In this document: piece by piece, positions 3,762 to 18,039 of the stretch | How positions within the stretch are numbered: the first letter of the stretch is position 1 | Layout: every line of letters starts with the position of its first letter | Assembly: GCA_907165135.1 (NCBI GenBank) | Contig: OU015568.1 | Span: 4,402,001 to 4,466,000 of the forward strand | Reading direction: 5' to 3' | DNA length: 64,000 bases | Origin: Oikopleura dioica | Lineage: Eukaryota > Animalia > Chordata | Notes under the pieces: generated by a model | What the model saw: the letters and a program-made list of their open reading frames with translations, nothing else | Databases searched by the model: none | What the model was told of the DNA's origin: nothing | Position numbers and translations under genes: made by a program

Positions 3762-6700
3762 ATAAAAAAATCATCAGAGATTTCTGTCTCCTCCCTTTCC
3801 TGAGTTCTAGTGCTTCCCTCGTGCCAAGTATTGGGCCTTCCGGAATTGCTCTCCCTTCTTTTTCTCGACGAAACTCGCGCTGGATCGGATCGTTTGCTAG
3901 AAAATCAGGAATGCAAATGTTTAACGGAAATAAAACTGAAAGTAAGCAAATCAGCACATGCAAACATAAAACGTAACACTTAAAAACTGGCGACAAAAAG
4001 CAAAGCTTTTGACTTTTTTGGTTTCTCGTAGAAAAAATTTAGTGGTATTTTAAAAAGCCTGGAAGTTGATTTACCGGACTCGAGGGTATGATGCATTTTT
4101 TCGCCTTCCACGAAGATTTTCATAAAAAAATCTTGAAATCTCGAAGCCGCGCGCGGCTTCCCTTTTTTACTCAATTTTCCAATAGTCAAAAGCCGCTGCA
4201 AAAATATTGAAAAAAAAGCCGCGCGCGGCTCTTTTAATAATGAAATTTTCCGAAAGTTTTTTAAGAAAAAAAAACCGCAAAAATGCGGCTTTACTTTTCA
4301 AAATTCAAAATCTCCTCCTTCGAACGACTCTTTCTGCCATGGTTTCTCTTTTTGTCCGGTCTTGACTGTATAATGAACTTTTGAAAAAAAAGACGGTTAA
4401 CTGTAACGGGGAAATCAAATTTACTTTTGGCTTGTTATCGGGGGAAATTTGAAAGTTGGAAATTTACCTTGAAGAGGCGGATCCCGATGATCTACGGGTC
4501 GCATTTCTACGTCTTTTTGGATTTATTGAATTTCATAGCGACACCCTTAAGCGCAAGAATGTTTTTTTTCCTCTCAAATCGAATTTTCTATTATAAAAAA
4601 ACTCATCTAAAGTGCAAGAATTAGATGGTCAAAGTTCATTTTCGAATTCTGAGTTTTTTAAAATAAGGTGGCGATACCCTTAATTTATAAATCCGAACAT
4701 GGCTAAGCGAAGATTCTGTTCTCTGCATTACTCTTATTTTTGTTGGTCTGGTTAGTGCAAACTTCTGAAAAAGTTTGTTTTCATCGCTGTTTTATTATTA
4801 GCCATGAGCAAACAGCGAGTCATAAAAAATTCTCATAAATTTCAAAAATAGTAAATTTTCAAGTGCATCCGCTCGGCACCTGTCCTTTTTTGGCGCCGAT
4901 AATGGTCCCAAAGCTCTACTGTAAAAATCAGATCACAAGACGAGTACTGTATTTTATCAGCTCGATAAAATACTGAATTATGCTTGTTTTTGCGTAAGTT
5001 CAAATCATCAATTTCTAAGAAAAAAAAGAAGCCATCCAAAAATTAAAGGCACGCTTGCATTGAGAAACTAAACTTACAAGTTCGAGCAATTTATTTCGGC
5101 AACGGATTGCCTTCGACAAGTTGGGCGGTCTTTTCGAATCGGTCTGATCAAAATAATGATTTTTAGATGTCTTAAATGACTGTAAATTTTACTGCTCTGG
5201 GCTAACAAACCTGTGTCAGGGATTTCTAAAAGAGCTATATTTAAAAGCCGCGTAGCGGCTTTCTCGAAAACAAAGCCGCGCAGCGGCTTTGCTAGATATA
5301 AACTAAAGGGTCTAGGTTTTTTTGGCAAAGCCGCTGAAAAAGCCGCAAAAATAAGGACCCTGACTCAGGTAAAAAAAAATATTTTTTTCTTTCGAAATTT
5401 TCGTCTCAAAAAATTTCTTACCGTAAAAATCCAGCCGTCAGGGAATTCTTTCTTTTCAGCGGCTTCGGTTTTTCGTCGAATCTGTCTCTATTTTTCAACT
5501 CTTCTTCAAAATTTTCGTCGATCGAATTCTTCAAATCGAACTGCTCATTCTCGGGATGCGTGAATAAACTCTTCGTTGATCCATATTTTTGGGAGTTCTT
5601 CAAAGTAGAATTTGCAGAACTGGAGCTGCTGCTGGAGAGATTCTGGTTGAAAAAAATTGTTATTTGAAGAAAGATAAAAAAATGAGGACCAAGTGTGAGG
5701 AGCTGCCGTACAATTATCAATGAAAAGGGCCACATGCCACGAGAACTGACAGGACAAAAGGACGTTCTAAGAGTCGCTTAGAATTTTTTGTACCGCCGCC
5801 AGAACGGAAATAGTTCGAAAATAAGGGCGAACAGAATTGTTCCCTGATTTTAATTTTTTGCTCGATTTTTTGAGATAAAATTTTTATTATTTTAGTTTAA
5901 TCTTATAAAAAAAGCTCCAACCCTTATTTTGGGCAGCTCAAATCGACAAAAAACCGCGAAATAAAGACCAAAATATTGGTCAATTTTTGACCAATCGAAT
6001 TTCCCCATTCGGTCGGTTAGCCAATCAGATTTCGAAAGAAAATTTTTGGAAAATTCGAATTTTTGTCGGATTCTTTTTTGTCGATTTGAGCGGACAACCC
6101 TTATTTTTTTCATAAAATAAACAAAACTTACGAGAGCATCAGAAACACCATTCTTAAAAATCTGGCCCAAGTCGGACACCGATCTCAAAAACTGTCTTTT
6201 CCTCCTCAAATTCTCTCTTTTCCCGCTTCTTTTCATCACGATTTCCTCTCTCTATTTTTCTTTTCAACTATTTTTGTCTCTATCGTAAAATATTAAATTA
6301 TTCGATCCAAATGATAAATAAAAAGAGAGTGATCTACCACTCTTGACAGCAGTTCAACTTTTTGGGACATGGTAGGAGTAGTAGCCGACTCAGAGAAAAT
6401 TAAGGAGGATCATTTTATGATTCATTTGAGTCCAAAAATTATTCACGGAATCGTGGATTAAGGCTCTCCCCAATTAAAAAAAGCTATATAACGAACTTTA
6501 AATTACTTCCCAGCTCGACAATCTTTCAGCAAAACCTGACTCAGGGTCTGACTCAAGGTTGAAGAAAAGATTGAGAATTTTTTCTTTGAAAAAGCCGCAT
6601 TCGGCTTCGTTTTTTGGCCGCTTTGCGGCTTTCTTTTTTCAAAGATTTTTCAGGACCCTGACTCAGGTTTTCAACACAGGTTTTCTAGCGCTTTTTTTAC

Positions 6701-11248: not shown

Positions 11249-13738
<2,490 letters not shown>

Positions 13739-13911
13739 TACAAACTCACTTCAAAATGCTCGTCGGTAAGATCGTTAAAACGAACCCAAAAAGCGGAATC
13801 AGAAGAGTTTTATGATCTGCGCGTAAAACCGGCGAATCGAGCATCATTTCAAAAATAAACTACTTTTCTTGTTGATTATTATTTCTTTCGAGAAATCATA
13901 ACAAACAGCTA

Positions 13912-16304
13912 ATGGATCGAGCAATCGAATTGAACAAGAGAATCTGTTCTTTGGTCGAGCTTCTGGGAGGCGAAGGGATTCCGATTGTTCTTGATCGAAT
14001 CGGCGGCGATTCCGGCCAAAAGAAAGCAGGTTTGCAAGAGGCTTCTGGAAGAGAGAAAAAGGACGAGACAAGTCAAGAATCTGATGAGTCTTATGAGTTG
14101 GAAAACGTATTGACGCATCCACAAGAACTGACAAGAGAAGTTGTTGAGAAATGGCTGGAAGAGTTTCTAAAGAAATTGAAGAGAAAAACGAGCAGAAATG
14201 ATTTGGAAAGGTTGATTTTGTCGATGGACAGAATGCAGTTTAAAGATAATCGTTGTGCTCACTGGGACGAGGTCAATTTCGAACATGGAAAAGGAAAGCT
14301 ATCTGGAGCAAACTATCGGGGAAACAAAGTTCAGGGAGAATGGAGAGTAACTCCATTCCAAAAAATGATTCTCGACAAAAATCCTGGCTTCGAAGGACGA
14401 AAAATTCAACGTTCGGAATTAAAAGAAGAAACCGGAGAATCGATTCTTGATGAATCTTTTCAGCAAATTTCAGCTGGAGGAGAAGCGATTGTTTTGAAAG
14501 AAAAATTCGGAGAATTGGAAGTTGCTGTTCGGGTTCAGGCGTTTGATCCCGCGTTGTTTACGGACAATGAAAAATTGGAGTTCAAAATTCATGTTTCAGA
14601 AGGTAATTTTTATTTCTTAATTTTTTTTTCAATATTTTTAAGAATACGAAATCGCCCAAAACAAGAAAAAAGACAACGCCCGAGTAATTCCTGTCCACAA
14701 AAACGTGATCAAGAATTTCTGCAACATCGAAGTCTCTTTGAGCAGCGACTTGGAAAAGAAAGACTGTGTTGGCTGGATTACGATTATGGAGAAATGCGAC
14801 TCGGATTTGAGAAGGAAATTGAAGAATAATGAGTTGAATTTGGGAGAAAGGAAGAAAATTGCGATTGGCGTCAAAGAGGGAAAAGATTATTTGCGTAAAA
14901 TTGGAATTTTTCATTTGGATGAGAAGCCGGAAAATATCCTTCTGAAAAATGGAGAAGCCAAATGGATCGATTTCAGCATTATTCACGAAATAACTGGACG
15001 AGAGAGTTATCGGGAGATGGGATACGCGAGGAGAGGAAGCAGATTTAGAAGATACATGTGTTTATGTAAGTTTTGAGCTTGTCGAAAAATTCTAGTGTTC
15101 TATCTCTTTTTTCGTAGATGCGGGGACTCCTGCCTTTTCTTTTGGCGCACAGATAGGCGGAACCTTCGGAAGATGTGTATCTCGTCCTCATATTTTGATT
15201 CTTTGCGAGTGGAAGACAGCCTGGACTCTTTTATTCAAACCAATTGAAGAAAAAGATAGAGAGATAGTCAAAAAAGAACTTGAGGTGAGTGTTTACTTTT
15301 TGTATAAAAAAATAATCTTTCTTAGACTTGCAATGCTGGCTGGCTCCCAAATAACGTTCCTTCAACCGAAGAAATCCAAAACTTGTCAAAAATCATTTCT
15401 CTTGAAACCGCGTCTTCTGATTTTTGCTTAGACGATCCGAATTTGACGAAATCAGCTGCAATGGCCAGTCTCAAACAAAAACTGACAAAAGAGATCAATT
15501 TCGACTTCAAAAACGTGACCAAGAATGTTTTAAACCAAAAAGAAAGCAATCTCTGTGTACCCATTTCAGTTTCGGTGCTTTTGAGATGGACACTCAAAAA
15601 TGATTTGGGAATTGATGATTCTGAAATGGTAAGATTTTTTACTCTCGAAAAAATCTTCACAAGACTGACAATGCTGATTTATCCGCGGAGTTTGGCTGGC
15701 TTCAATCTCAACCCAAAATTCGAAGAACAAAAATTTCAAACGAACGAAATTGAAATGCTTCTCAGAAGATTGAAGTTCAGGACTTTTTTGAGTAGAAGTG
15801 GATGGGATATTATCAGAGAAAACTCAAGCGACTACTCGATAAATGCCAGTGGACGGCAAATTAATAAAAAAGAGACAAACATCGACTCGATAAATGCCAA
15901 TTTTGATTTCGAGAAAAGTAAAAATTCAAAGCTAAAAATCAAATTAAATTAAATATTCAGTCCTCCTCCACGGCAACTTCGTCTTCTCCCGTCCCCTAAC
16001 CGTCACCGGCGTCTATCTAAATCCGGACTCTTCAATGATTTTCCACCAAATGGTGCTGGACCGAATCGAAAACTCCGAATTCATTCTCCAAAACACGCTC
16101 ATCGACCATTCCGGCTCTCAAATCAGAATTCCAGTTTCAAGAAAATACTACGCCGTTTACGAAATGATGAAAGACTGCTACTATTGCTACAACGATTATG
16201 TGTTTTATGGAGACAACAACAAGTTTCTTGAGTTAGTTAACGAAAATTCAACATGGAAACAGAAAAATGGTATCTTCTACCGCAAGCTTATTCAATTACT
16301 CTGA
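13912..16304 (+). CDS. Protein kinase-like domain fused to a C-terminal papain-like (clan CA) cysteine-protease-like domain, 5 exons, ~740 aa
   Basis: Four GT-AG introns (~14603-14643, 15067-15117, ~15285-15326, ~15920-15960) join the ORFs in frame. Kinase motifs SAGGEAIV, VAVR, HLDEKPENILL, WIDFS, YAGTPAF. Protease-like motifs NQKESNLC and FHQMVLD...ILQNT. Confidence 0.75.
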
Positions 16305-16524
16305 CGAGAACTCGATGACTGAAAAACATTCCTTTATTACGAACACGTGATCGTGAAAATAAAAATTGTGAAAATAATTTTCATTTTCTTATAATTTTGC
16401 AGTAGACTATTACTAGAGCGGCGACGAGACAGCTCCTGTCCAGAAACCAACCAGAGCAAAAACAGCTATTTTGTTTTGTTTTATTATCGATGTACACTGT
16501 ACAGTTTGAAGAGATTGTGGCAGG

Positions 16525-17007
16525 CATAGTCGGGGTGCGCGTGCGTGCGTGTTTTCGCACGCGCACGCACTCGCACGCAAGATTTTCAAATACTTGCGCA
16601 CGCGCACCCGGAGATAAAAAGAGCGCACGTGCGCGCACGCGTGCGAATAGGAAAAAAAAGGGTTTTTCTTCGAAATTTGGAGTTTTTTCTCCTTACTCGA
16701 AAATTTTGCGAATATCGAAGAGAAATCGTTTTTTGGTGTTTTTGAAGAGCCCTTGATAAGCTATTATAGGTATAAAGTGTTTATAAAACATTATTCATAA
16801 GAAAATTACTTGAAAAAACCTCAATTTTCGCCAAAAAAACTCGAAAATATACCTTGAAAAATACGCACGCGTGTTCGCGCGTGCGCGCGCACGCACGCGC
16901 ACTCCTCTTTTTTAAAGCGCACGCGCACACACGCGCACGCGGATTTCGAGAAAAATTCGCACCCGCACGCACGCGCACGCGAGTTTCGGGTGTTTTTTCC
17001 AACTATG
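16525..17007. mobile_element. 483-bp MITE with 8-bp TSD (hAT- or P-like) and CGCA/GTGC-rich subterminal arms
   Basis: Begins CATAGT and ends ACTATG. GTGGCAGG is duplicated at 16517-16524 and 17008-17015. The arms are rich in GCGCACGC and GCGTGCGC units. Confidence 0.8.
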
Positions 17008-17059
17008 GTGGCAGGTGGTAGGACAAGTGAAAGAAGCAGATTTACAAAAAAAGGGCTAA

Positions 17060-18039
<980 letters not shown>

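Follow-up and report, generated by a model that had tools for sequence, protein, structure and literature searches.

A large Oikopleura gene family joining a divergent kinase domain to a predicted papain-fold protease domain, and a young, probably decaying copy of it

We analysed a window of 64,000 nucleotides from the genome of the tunicate chordate Oikopleura dioica (assembly GCA_907165135.1, contig OU015568.1, positions 4,402,001 to 4,466,000; all coordinates below are positions in the window unless a paralog is named). At 13912-16304 on the + strand it contains a gene whose product combines a divergent protein kinase domain with a C-terminal domain of predicted papain-like fold. The gene has five exons and four introns of 40-52 nt, all with GT..AG boundaries, as is typical of a compact-intron animal gene, and its frame is open throughout. 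From N to C terminus, the product of ~739 amino acids comprises a region to which no fold could be assigned, the kinase domain, and a C-terminal domain of ~310 residues. Exons were searched singly, while whole-domain searches and folds used paralogs in which the domain is a natural open frame.

Exon 1 (13912-14602, +) encodes a variable N-terminal extension (residues 1-67, common to only some close paralogs), a conserved region that begins at THPQELT (14113), and then the first part of the kinase N-lobe. Residues 1-170 found no match in Pfam, and the N-terminal region gave no usable match by ESM Atlas features. The kinase core is encoded by exon 2 (14643-15065, +) and the end of the kinase-like domain by exon 3 (15118-15284, +). 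Exon 4 (15326-15917, in frame 15326-15916, +) opens with a linker that includes the conserved stretch CLDDPNLTKS and continues into the first half of the putative papain-fold domain; exon 5 (15961-16304, in frame 15963-16301, +) supplies the beta half of that domain and the stop codon as assembled. A candidate polyadenylation signal, AATAAA, lies at 16358-16363 (+). Neither a transmembrane segment nor a signal peptide is apparent in the whole product, where the maximum of a 19-residue Kyte-Doolittle window is 1.11, and the protein is predicted to be cytosolic.

The Pfam Pkinase profile (PF00069) matches exon 2 with 36.5 bits (gathering cutoff 31.7; E 4.5e-9). Exon 1 contributes a degenerate G-loop-like stretch, SAGGEAIV (14470-14493), which departs from GxGxxG. 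The catalytic loop in exon 2, HLDEKPEN (14912-14935), is of the non-RD type, that is, without Arg before the catalytic Asp, and retains that Asp and the catalytic Asn. In exon 3, GTPAFS (15123-15140) is followed by CEWKTAW (15204-15224), the equivalent of DxWSxG. Comparison with solved structures returned only generic kinases as nearest relatives (CDK9, MAPK and GCN2, E ~1e-4); no subfamily emerged, and no link to the kinases of Ire1 or RNase L was found. As judged from these motifs, the kinase half is a real but atypical eukaryotic protein kinase (ePK) domain.

The C-terminal domain carries four residues in the arrangement of a papain-type active site. Exon 4 reads NQKESNLCVP, with Gln (CAA, 15536-15538) and Cys (TGT, 15554-15556) at a spacing of 6, and exon 5 reads FHQMVLD...ILQNT, with His (16044-16046) and Asn (16092-16094) at a spacing of 16. 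Among own-genome paralogs and public relatives, Gln is conserved in 53 of 57, Cys in 57 of 59, His in 53 of 56 and Asn in 45 of 65; this conservation across all four columns indicates that the motifs are not a product of chance. Some paralogs have Ser in place of Cys, or lack the Asn. Exon 4 also contains two family motifs, YPRSLAG (15680-15700) and SGW (15797).

A sequence-only reading of this stretch had proposed a spliced frame running from kinase motifs into these residues, and much of it has held. The four positions and both spacings are exact in the translation of exons 4 and 5, the five exons and four GT-AG introns form one open frame, the Pfam score supports the kinase-like domain, and the hydropathy maximum agrees with the claim that no signal peptide or membrane segment is present. 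Its further proposal, that the C-terminal domain is papain-like, gained support from structural modelling of the family.

Searches by sequence gave no indication of what this domain is. Pfam, queried with exons 4 and 5 and with 10 relatives at E values up to 5, produced no match for the C-terminal domain, including to PF00112, PF03412 and PF13529, and a family profile compared with PDB sequences found chance matches only. The protease domain is highly diverged, beyond recognition by any sequence profile. Because an intron splits the domain in the window, we modelled own-genome paralogs in which it occupies one open frame. A family-profile search of 1.84 billion proteins yielded 212 relatives and, from these, a deeper alignment (A2), with which AlphaFold2 (AF2) produced a model of the intronless paralog L029 with a predicted local distance difference test (pLDDT) of 81, a predicted template modelling score (pTM) of 0.74 and a core above pLDDT 90. 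In this model, Gln76 precedes Cys82, which opens a helix spanning 82-98; His203 lies in the strand 199-211, and Asn221 follows the strand 216-220.

When the L029 model was compared exhaustively with 48,161 PDB representatives by VIA-align, papain-fold cysteine peptidases made up 46 of the 50 best matches. The Z scores were 10.2 for Der f 1 (root-mean-square deviation 3.1 Å over 147 residues), 10.1 for both Der p 1 and xylellain, 9.6 for cathepsin B, 9.5 for the C39 domain of PCAT1, and 9.0 for ComA. Several of these alignments begin at Gln76 of the model, which is paired with residue 23 of cathepsin B, 228 of cathepsin C and 11 of ComA; we take these to be their oxyanion Gln residues in the published numbering. 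Foldseek returned the same fold class throughout, and the ESM Atlas, whether queried by shape or by language-model features, pointed to C39-like and C1 families. Together, the modelled paralog and its structural matches support a clan CA fold and catalytic layout for the C-terminal domain.

An earlier model was built on another paralog, L009 (G000:C2:12693217-12696741; 69-77% identical to the window copy), and was dropped: its alignment held 59 mostly fragmentary rows, its pLDDT was 53, and its Foldseek output was unusable, with C58 peptidases (YopT/AvrPphB) at E 0.2-0.8 among FERM domains. L009 is itself truncated, with unrelated repetitive DNA upstream in place of the kinase exons, and its frame reads through intron 4, an in-frame intron-like stretch of 42-43 nt that is open by chance. 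We regard L009 as a probable pseudogene.

The best structural matches belong to the papain family (MEROPS C1, clan CA), which includes Der f 1 and Der p 1, cathepsins B, C, L and K, and xylellain, with Z scores of 9-10.2 and deviations of ~3 Å over ~150 residues. The order Gln, Cys, His, Asn is shared with that family, as are the spacings of 6 and 16 and the predicted placement of Cys at the N terminus of a long helix and of His on a beta-strand. Unlike papain-family enzymes, the Oikopleura domain shows only 9-15% identity to them and no match to PF00112, has its own motifs (YPRSLAG, SGW and WYLLPQAYS), and is preceded by a kinase in place of a signal peptide and inhibitory prodomain, with a predicted cytosolic location. 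The second group of relatives, the C39 type (PCAT1 and ComA; Peptidase_C39_2; Z 8.7-9.5), provides the top ESM Atlas matches by both shape and language-model features. C39 domains resemble the present one in having a compact papain-like core, in being cytosolic and in being fused to another enzyme module; the alignment of ComA from residue 11, its Gln in the published numbering, implies the same Gln-Cys spacing. They differ in being bacterial, fused to ABC transporters and ~130-150 residues long, whereas the domain described here spans ~225 residues with an added helical insert and does not match PF03412 or PF13529.

The window gene is one member of a large family. Own-genome searches found at least 137 exon-4-like matches and at least 123 that are exon-5-like, spread over contigs 1, 2, 4 and 5 and in many cases clustered. 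The sequence-only reading had taken the gene for an intact and isolated curiosity; it belongs instead to a set of more than 100 loci, and as assembled it has lost a conserved strand to a frameshift (see below). Broken copies are common: stop codons interrupt 22 of the 137 matches to exon 4. Each named relative in public databases is an uncharacterised protein of O. dioica, and the remainder are marine metagenome fragments; the family, with its more than 100 loci, has so far been seen only in these two sources. We found no description of a kinase plus papain-fold family in the literature and no Pfam family for the combination, in line with the earlier claim that the architecture is not a standard one.

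Several relatives depart from the common layout. In a divergent subfamily (L039, 252-2039; P0072, P0143 and P0140 (L041)), one open reading frame (ORF) extends from the end of a protease domain into the following unit, through its N-terminal region and kinase, and P0140 reads protease-kinase-protease within 686 residues. These ORFs reflect read-through of tandem genes or else a changed order of domains. Three distant relatives on ENA metagenome contigs (P0124, P0140 and P0149) have HAVxL...xIKNS, more classically papain-type than the HQMVLD...LQNT of Oikopleura, and judging by these motifs they may bridge the family towards C1-like sequences. In the closest paralog, L042 (G000:C2:12120000-12129999, ~5141-5633), an insertion of ~490 bp occupies the place of the 40-nt intron 1 of the window gene.

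The history of the window copy can be read from its boundaries. Comparison by blastn with L042-L045, boundary alignments and own-genome DNA searches delimit a duplicated single-gene unit at 13756-17074 (+), which includes a later insertion of 485 bp. Its closest relatives form a cluster on contig 2 with 85-89% DNA identity, and homology to them starts and stops sharply at 13756 and 17074. The unit is bracketed by direct repeats of host sequence, each of 0.97 kb, at 12772-13738 (left) and 17094-18039 (right), which are 88-96% identical at a spacing of ~4.3 kb; the short filler at the two junctions (17 nt and 19 nt) is unrelated. The repeated sequence comprises the 3' end of a gamma-glutamyltranspeptidase-like gene together with that of a convergent gene. 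We read the unit as a recent 2.8-kb single-gene duplicate from the contig-2 cluster, inserted between convergent genes with an unusually long target duplication of 0.97 kb. A mobile element with fixed ends was considered for the 2.8-kb unit and rejected: its non-coding flanks are common to only a handful of contig-2 copies, which argues for a segmental duplicate with two breakpoints and not for a transposon.

Later changes have accumulated in this copy. The 485-bp insertion, at 16525-17009 in the 3' flank, resembles a miniature inverted-repeat transposable element (MITE): it has GC-rich GCGCACGCG-type terminal inverted repeats, is absent from the 3' flanks of the paralogs, and has 43 own-genome matches, including a near-full-length copy on contig 5 with 93% identity. 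Exon 4 contains an in-frame tandem duplication of 51 nt (15797-15898, +; two units 73% alike); it falls in the loop that connects the helical half of the protease domain to its beta half, and the paralogs compared lack the 17 extra residues. Relative to all 10 closest paralogs, one base is missing from an A4TT run at 16243-16248 (+). This deletion puts the conserved family tail FNMETEKWYLLPQAYSITLTRTR and its stop codon (16247-16318, +) out of frame, and the ORF ends instead in 19 unrelated residues. The sequence-only reading noted neither this deletion nor the duplication in exon 4. The tail includes WYLLPQAYS, which forms the final strand in the model (285-294, pLDDT ~90) and ranks among the best-conserved stretches of the family (W in 37 of 43, Y in 40 of 49, P in 37 of 48 and A in 38 of 48). 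Should the deletion be real, the copy probably has a crippled protease domain. When public assemblies were queried for an exact match to the frameshifted exon-5 ORF, none was on record. Against the four closest paralogs, the ratio of nonsynonymous to synonymous substitution rates (dN/dS) is 0.45-0.51, with dS of 0.21-0.26; by exon, constraint is stronger on the protease exons (0.29-0.57) than on the linker exon (0.54-0.99). As assembled, the copy is probably decaying or crippled.

We consider it likely that the family encodes cytosolic Cys-His peptidases under the cis control of an atypical kinase-like domain, and that the copy in the window is a young duplicate undergoing decay. From the data above we infer a catalytic mechanism, a regulatory contribution of the kinase and a possible part in conflict or immunity. 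Cys 15554, at the start of a long helix, would act as the nucleophile and His 16044, on a beta-strand, as the base; Asn 16092 would orient this His, and Gln 15536 would form the oxyanion hole. The kinase-like domain may regulate or target the protease in cis, through nucleotide binding, phosphorylation or oligomerisation.

Several observations weigh against this reading. In the kinase half, VAVRV (14521-14535) has Arg at the position of the usual ATP-anchoring beta-3 Lys (VAIK), as do three of the four relatives aligned there, and DFS (14969-14977) stands where the family consensus is DFG, with the Asp kept; together, these substitutions make kinase activity doubtful. At the sequence level, the C-terminal domain matches no peptidase family. 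The modelled L029 is a paralog that is 47% and 35% identical to exons 4 and 5 of the window, respectively, the placement of its triad was read solely from secondary structure and aligned ranges, and the Foldseek matches have E values of 0.014 or weaker. Because the deletion in exon 5 lies in a homopolymer, it could be an assembly error. Finally, four raw RNA runs, selected by species label, contained 1-5 partly fitting reads each (95-99% identity) and no splice joints; we took these reads for paralog transcripts, and none of the indexed RNA runs contains the window stretch. Divergence between strains or expression confined to certain stages may account for the missing reads, which makes this null result weak evidence against transcription.

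These points lead to alternatives for the locus itself. For the window copy, the one-chain architecture is predicted from the canonical GT-AG exon model, and since this copy has no RNA evidence, the kinase and the C-terminal domain could be separate genes or transcripts and their fusion an artefact of that model. We hold this to be very improbable. The kinase catalytic loop, DFG and the protease Gln and Cys share one uninterrupted ORF in L025 (655 residues) and L026 (669 residues), and the annotated O. dioica proteins CBY13560.1 (664 residues) and CBY31701.1 hold both domains, making the fusion a property of the family that does not depend on assumptions about splicing; in the window, moreover, a 41-nt GT-AG intron separates exon 3 from exon 4, with no stop, start or poly(A) signal between them. 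A more serious contender, although still the less probable view, is that the copy is intact and functional, that the missing base is a homopolymer assembly error, and that the true protein ends with the WYLLPQAYS strand. The difference amounts to a single base in a run that itself varies among paralogs (A5 in L016, A4T3 in L004), the five exons otherwise keep an open frame and canonical splice sites, and dN/dS on the protease exons is ~0.3-0.55. The frequency of broken copies in the family tells against intactness, as does the finding that no reads fit cleanly on the copy in the four RNA runs, and neither version is confirmed by a second assembly or a called gene.

Two further alternatives concern what the C-terminal domain does. 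It could be a non-catalytic pseudo-protease that serves as a binding or scaffold module, with Cys and His kept for structure or recognition; the lack of a match to any active peptidase family, the paralogs with Ser for Cys or without Asn, and the degenerate state of the kinase half (beta-3 Arg) would all fit such a role. Gln, Cys and His are, however, retained in more than 93% of the family, with canonical spacing and canonical placement on secondary-structure elements, a pattern that is hard to explain without catalysis, and we judge a pseudo-protease unlikely. Similarly unlikely, in our estimation, is a hydrolase of ubiquitin or ubiquitin-like modifiers (UBLs), which would make the protein a signalling enzyme that combines a kinase with a deubiquitinase. 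UfSP1/2, ZUFSP/Mug105 and ATG4 do appear among the structural matches with Z scores of 6.4-7.8, but C1 and C39 peptidases score higher (9-10.2), and no UBL-binding element was identified in this analysis. A Cys-His peptidase under the control of a kinase-like domain continues to be the reading that we prefer.

The biological role of such a protein can be approached through two known systems. Like the non-RD kinases of the IRAK/Pelle/RIPK type, the family has an ePK core with an HxD motif that lacks Arg (HLD here; HCD, HFD and HSD in paralogs), and the window copy retains the catalytic Asp, the Asn and the Asp of DFG. Unlike those kinases, it has the beta-3 Arg, a degenerate G-loop and no death domain, and its similarity to solved kinases reaches E ~1e-4 only, with CMGC kinases and GCN2 as the best matches. 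Non-RD kinases are associated with immunity, and such a link would extend to this family by analogy. The second system comprises RNase L and Ire1, in which a kinase or pseudokinase domain is followed by a C-terminal KEN hydrolase, and nucleotide binding or kinase dimerisation activates the effector. Here the likeness would be one of working principle only: a kinase-like domain lies N-terminal to an effector hydrolase within one cytosolic chain. KEN domains have been reported to be lineage-specifically expanded in Oikopleura (PMC3710099). Unlike RNase L and Ire1, the protein described here has a predicted papain-fold protease as its effector in place of a HEPN RNase, and no homology between the kinase domains was seen.

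A protease regulated by phosphorylation or nucleotides, with a role in defence or resembling that of a toxin, is no more than plausible. The non-RD type of the kinase, the size of the expansion and its birth-and-death pattern lead us to raise, as a tentative suggestion, a fast-evolving role in conflict or of an immune type. More specifically, and just as speculatively, the family might be a home-grown intracellular system of conflict or innate immunity, in which the kinase-like domain senses a cue from a pathogen or selfish element and switches on the fused protease effector, while the more than 100 fast-turnover loci supply diversity of recognition.

What is new here is a clan CA family, as predicted from the model, in a new domain architecture; both component domains are of known kinds. 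The locus in the window is an ordinary and probably damaged member of this family. It serves as a dated record of family spread and decay: the 2.8-kb duplicate arrived with a 0.97-kb target duplication and was later altered by a MITE insertion, a duplication within exon 4 and a frameshift. More broadly, the family provides a testable system for the regulation of a protease in cis by a kinase-like domain. The Oikopleura genome is among the most compact of animals, and more than 100 loci are a large share of so compact a genome. Family size, pseudogenes, clusters and dN/dS near 0.5 suggest strong, changing selection, a pattern typical of immunity, reproduction or genomic conflict. If an immune-type role proves true, the family would be a protease counterpart of RNase L.

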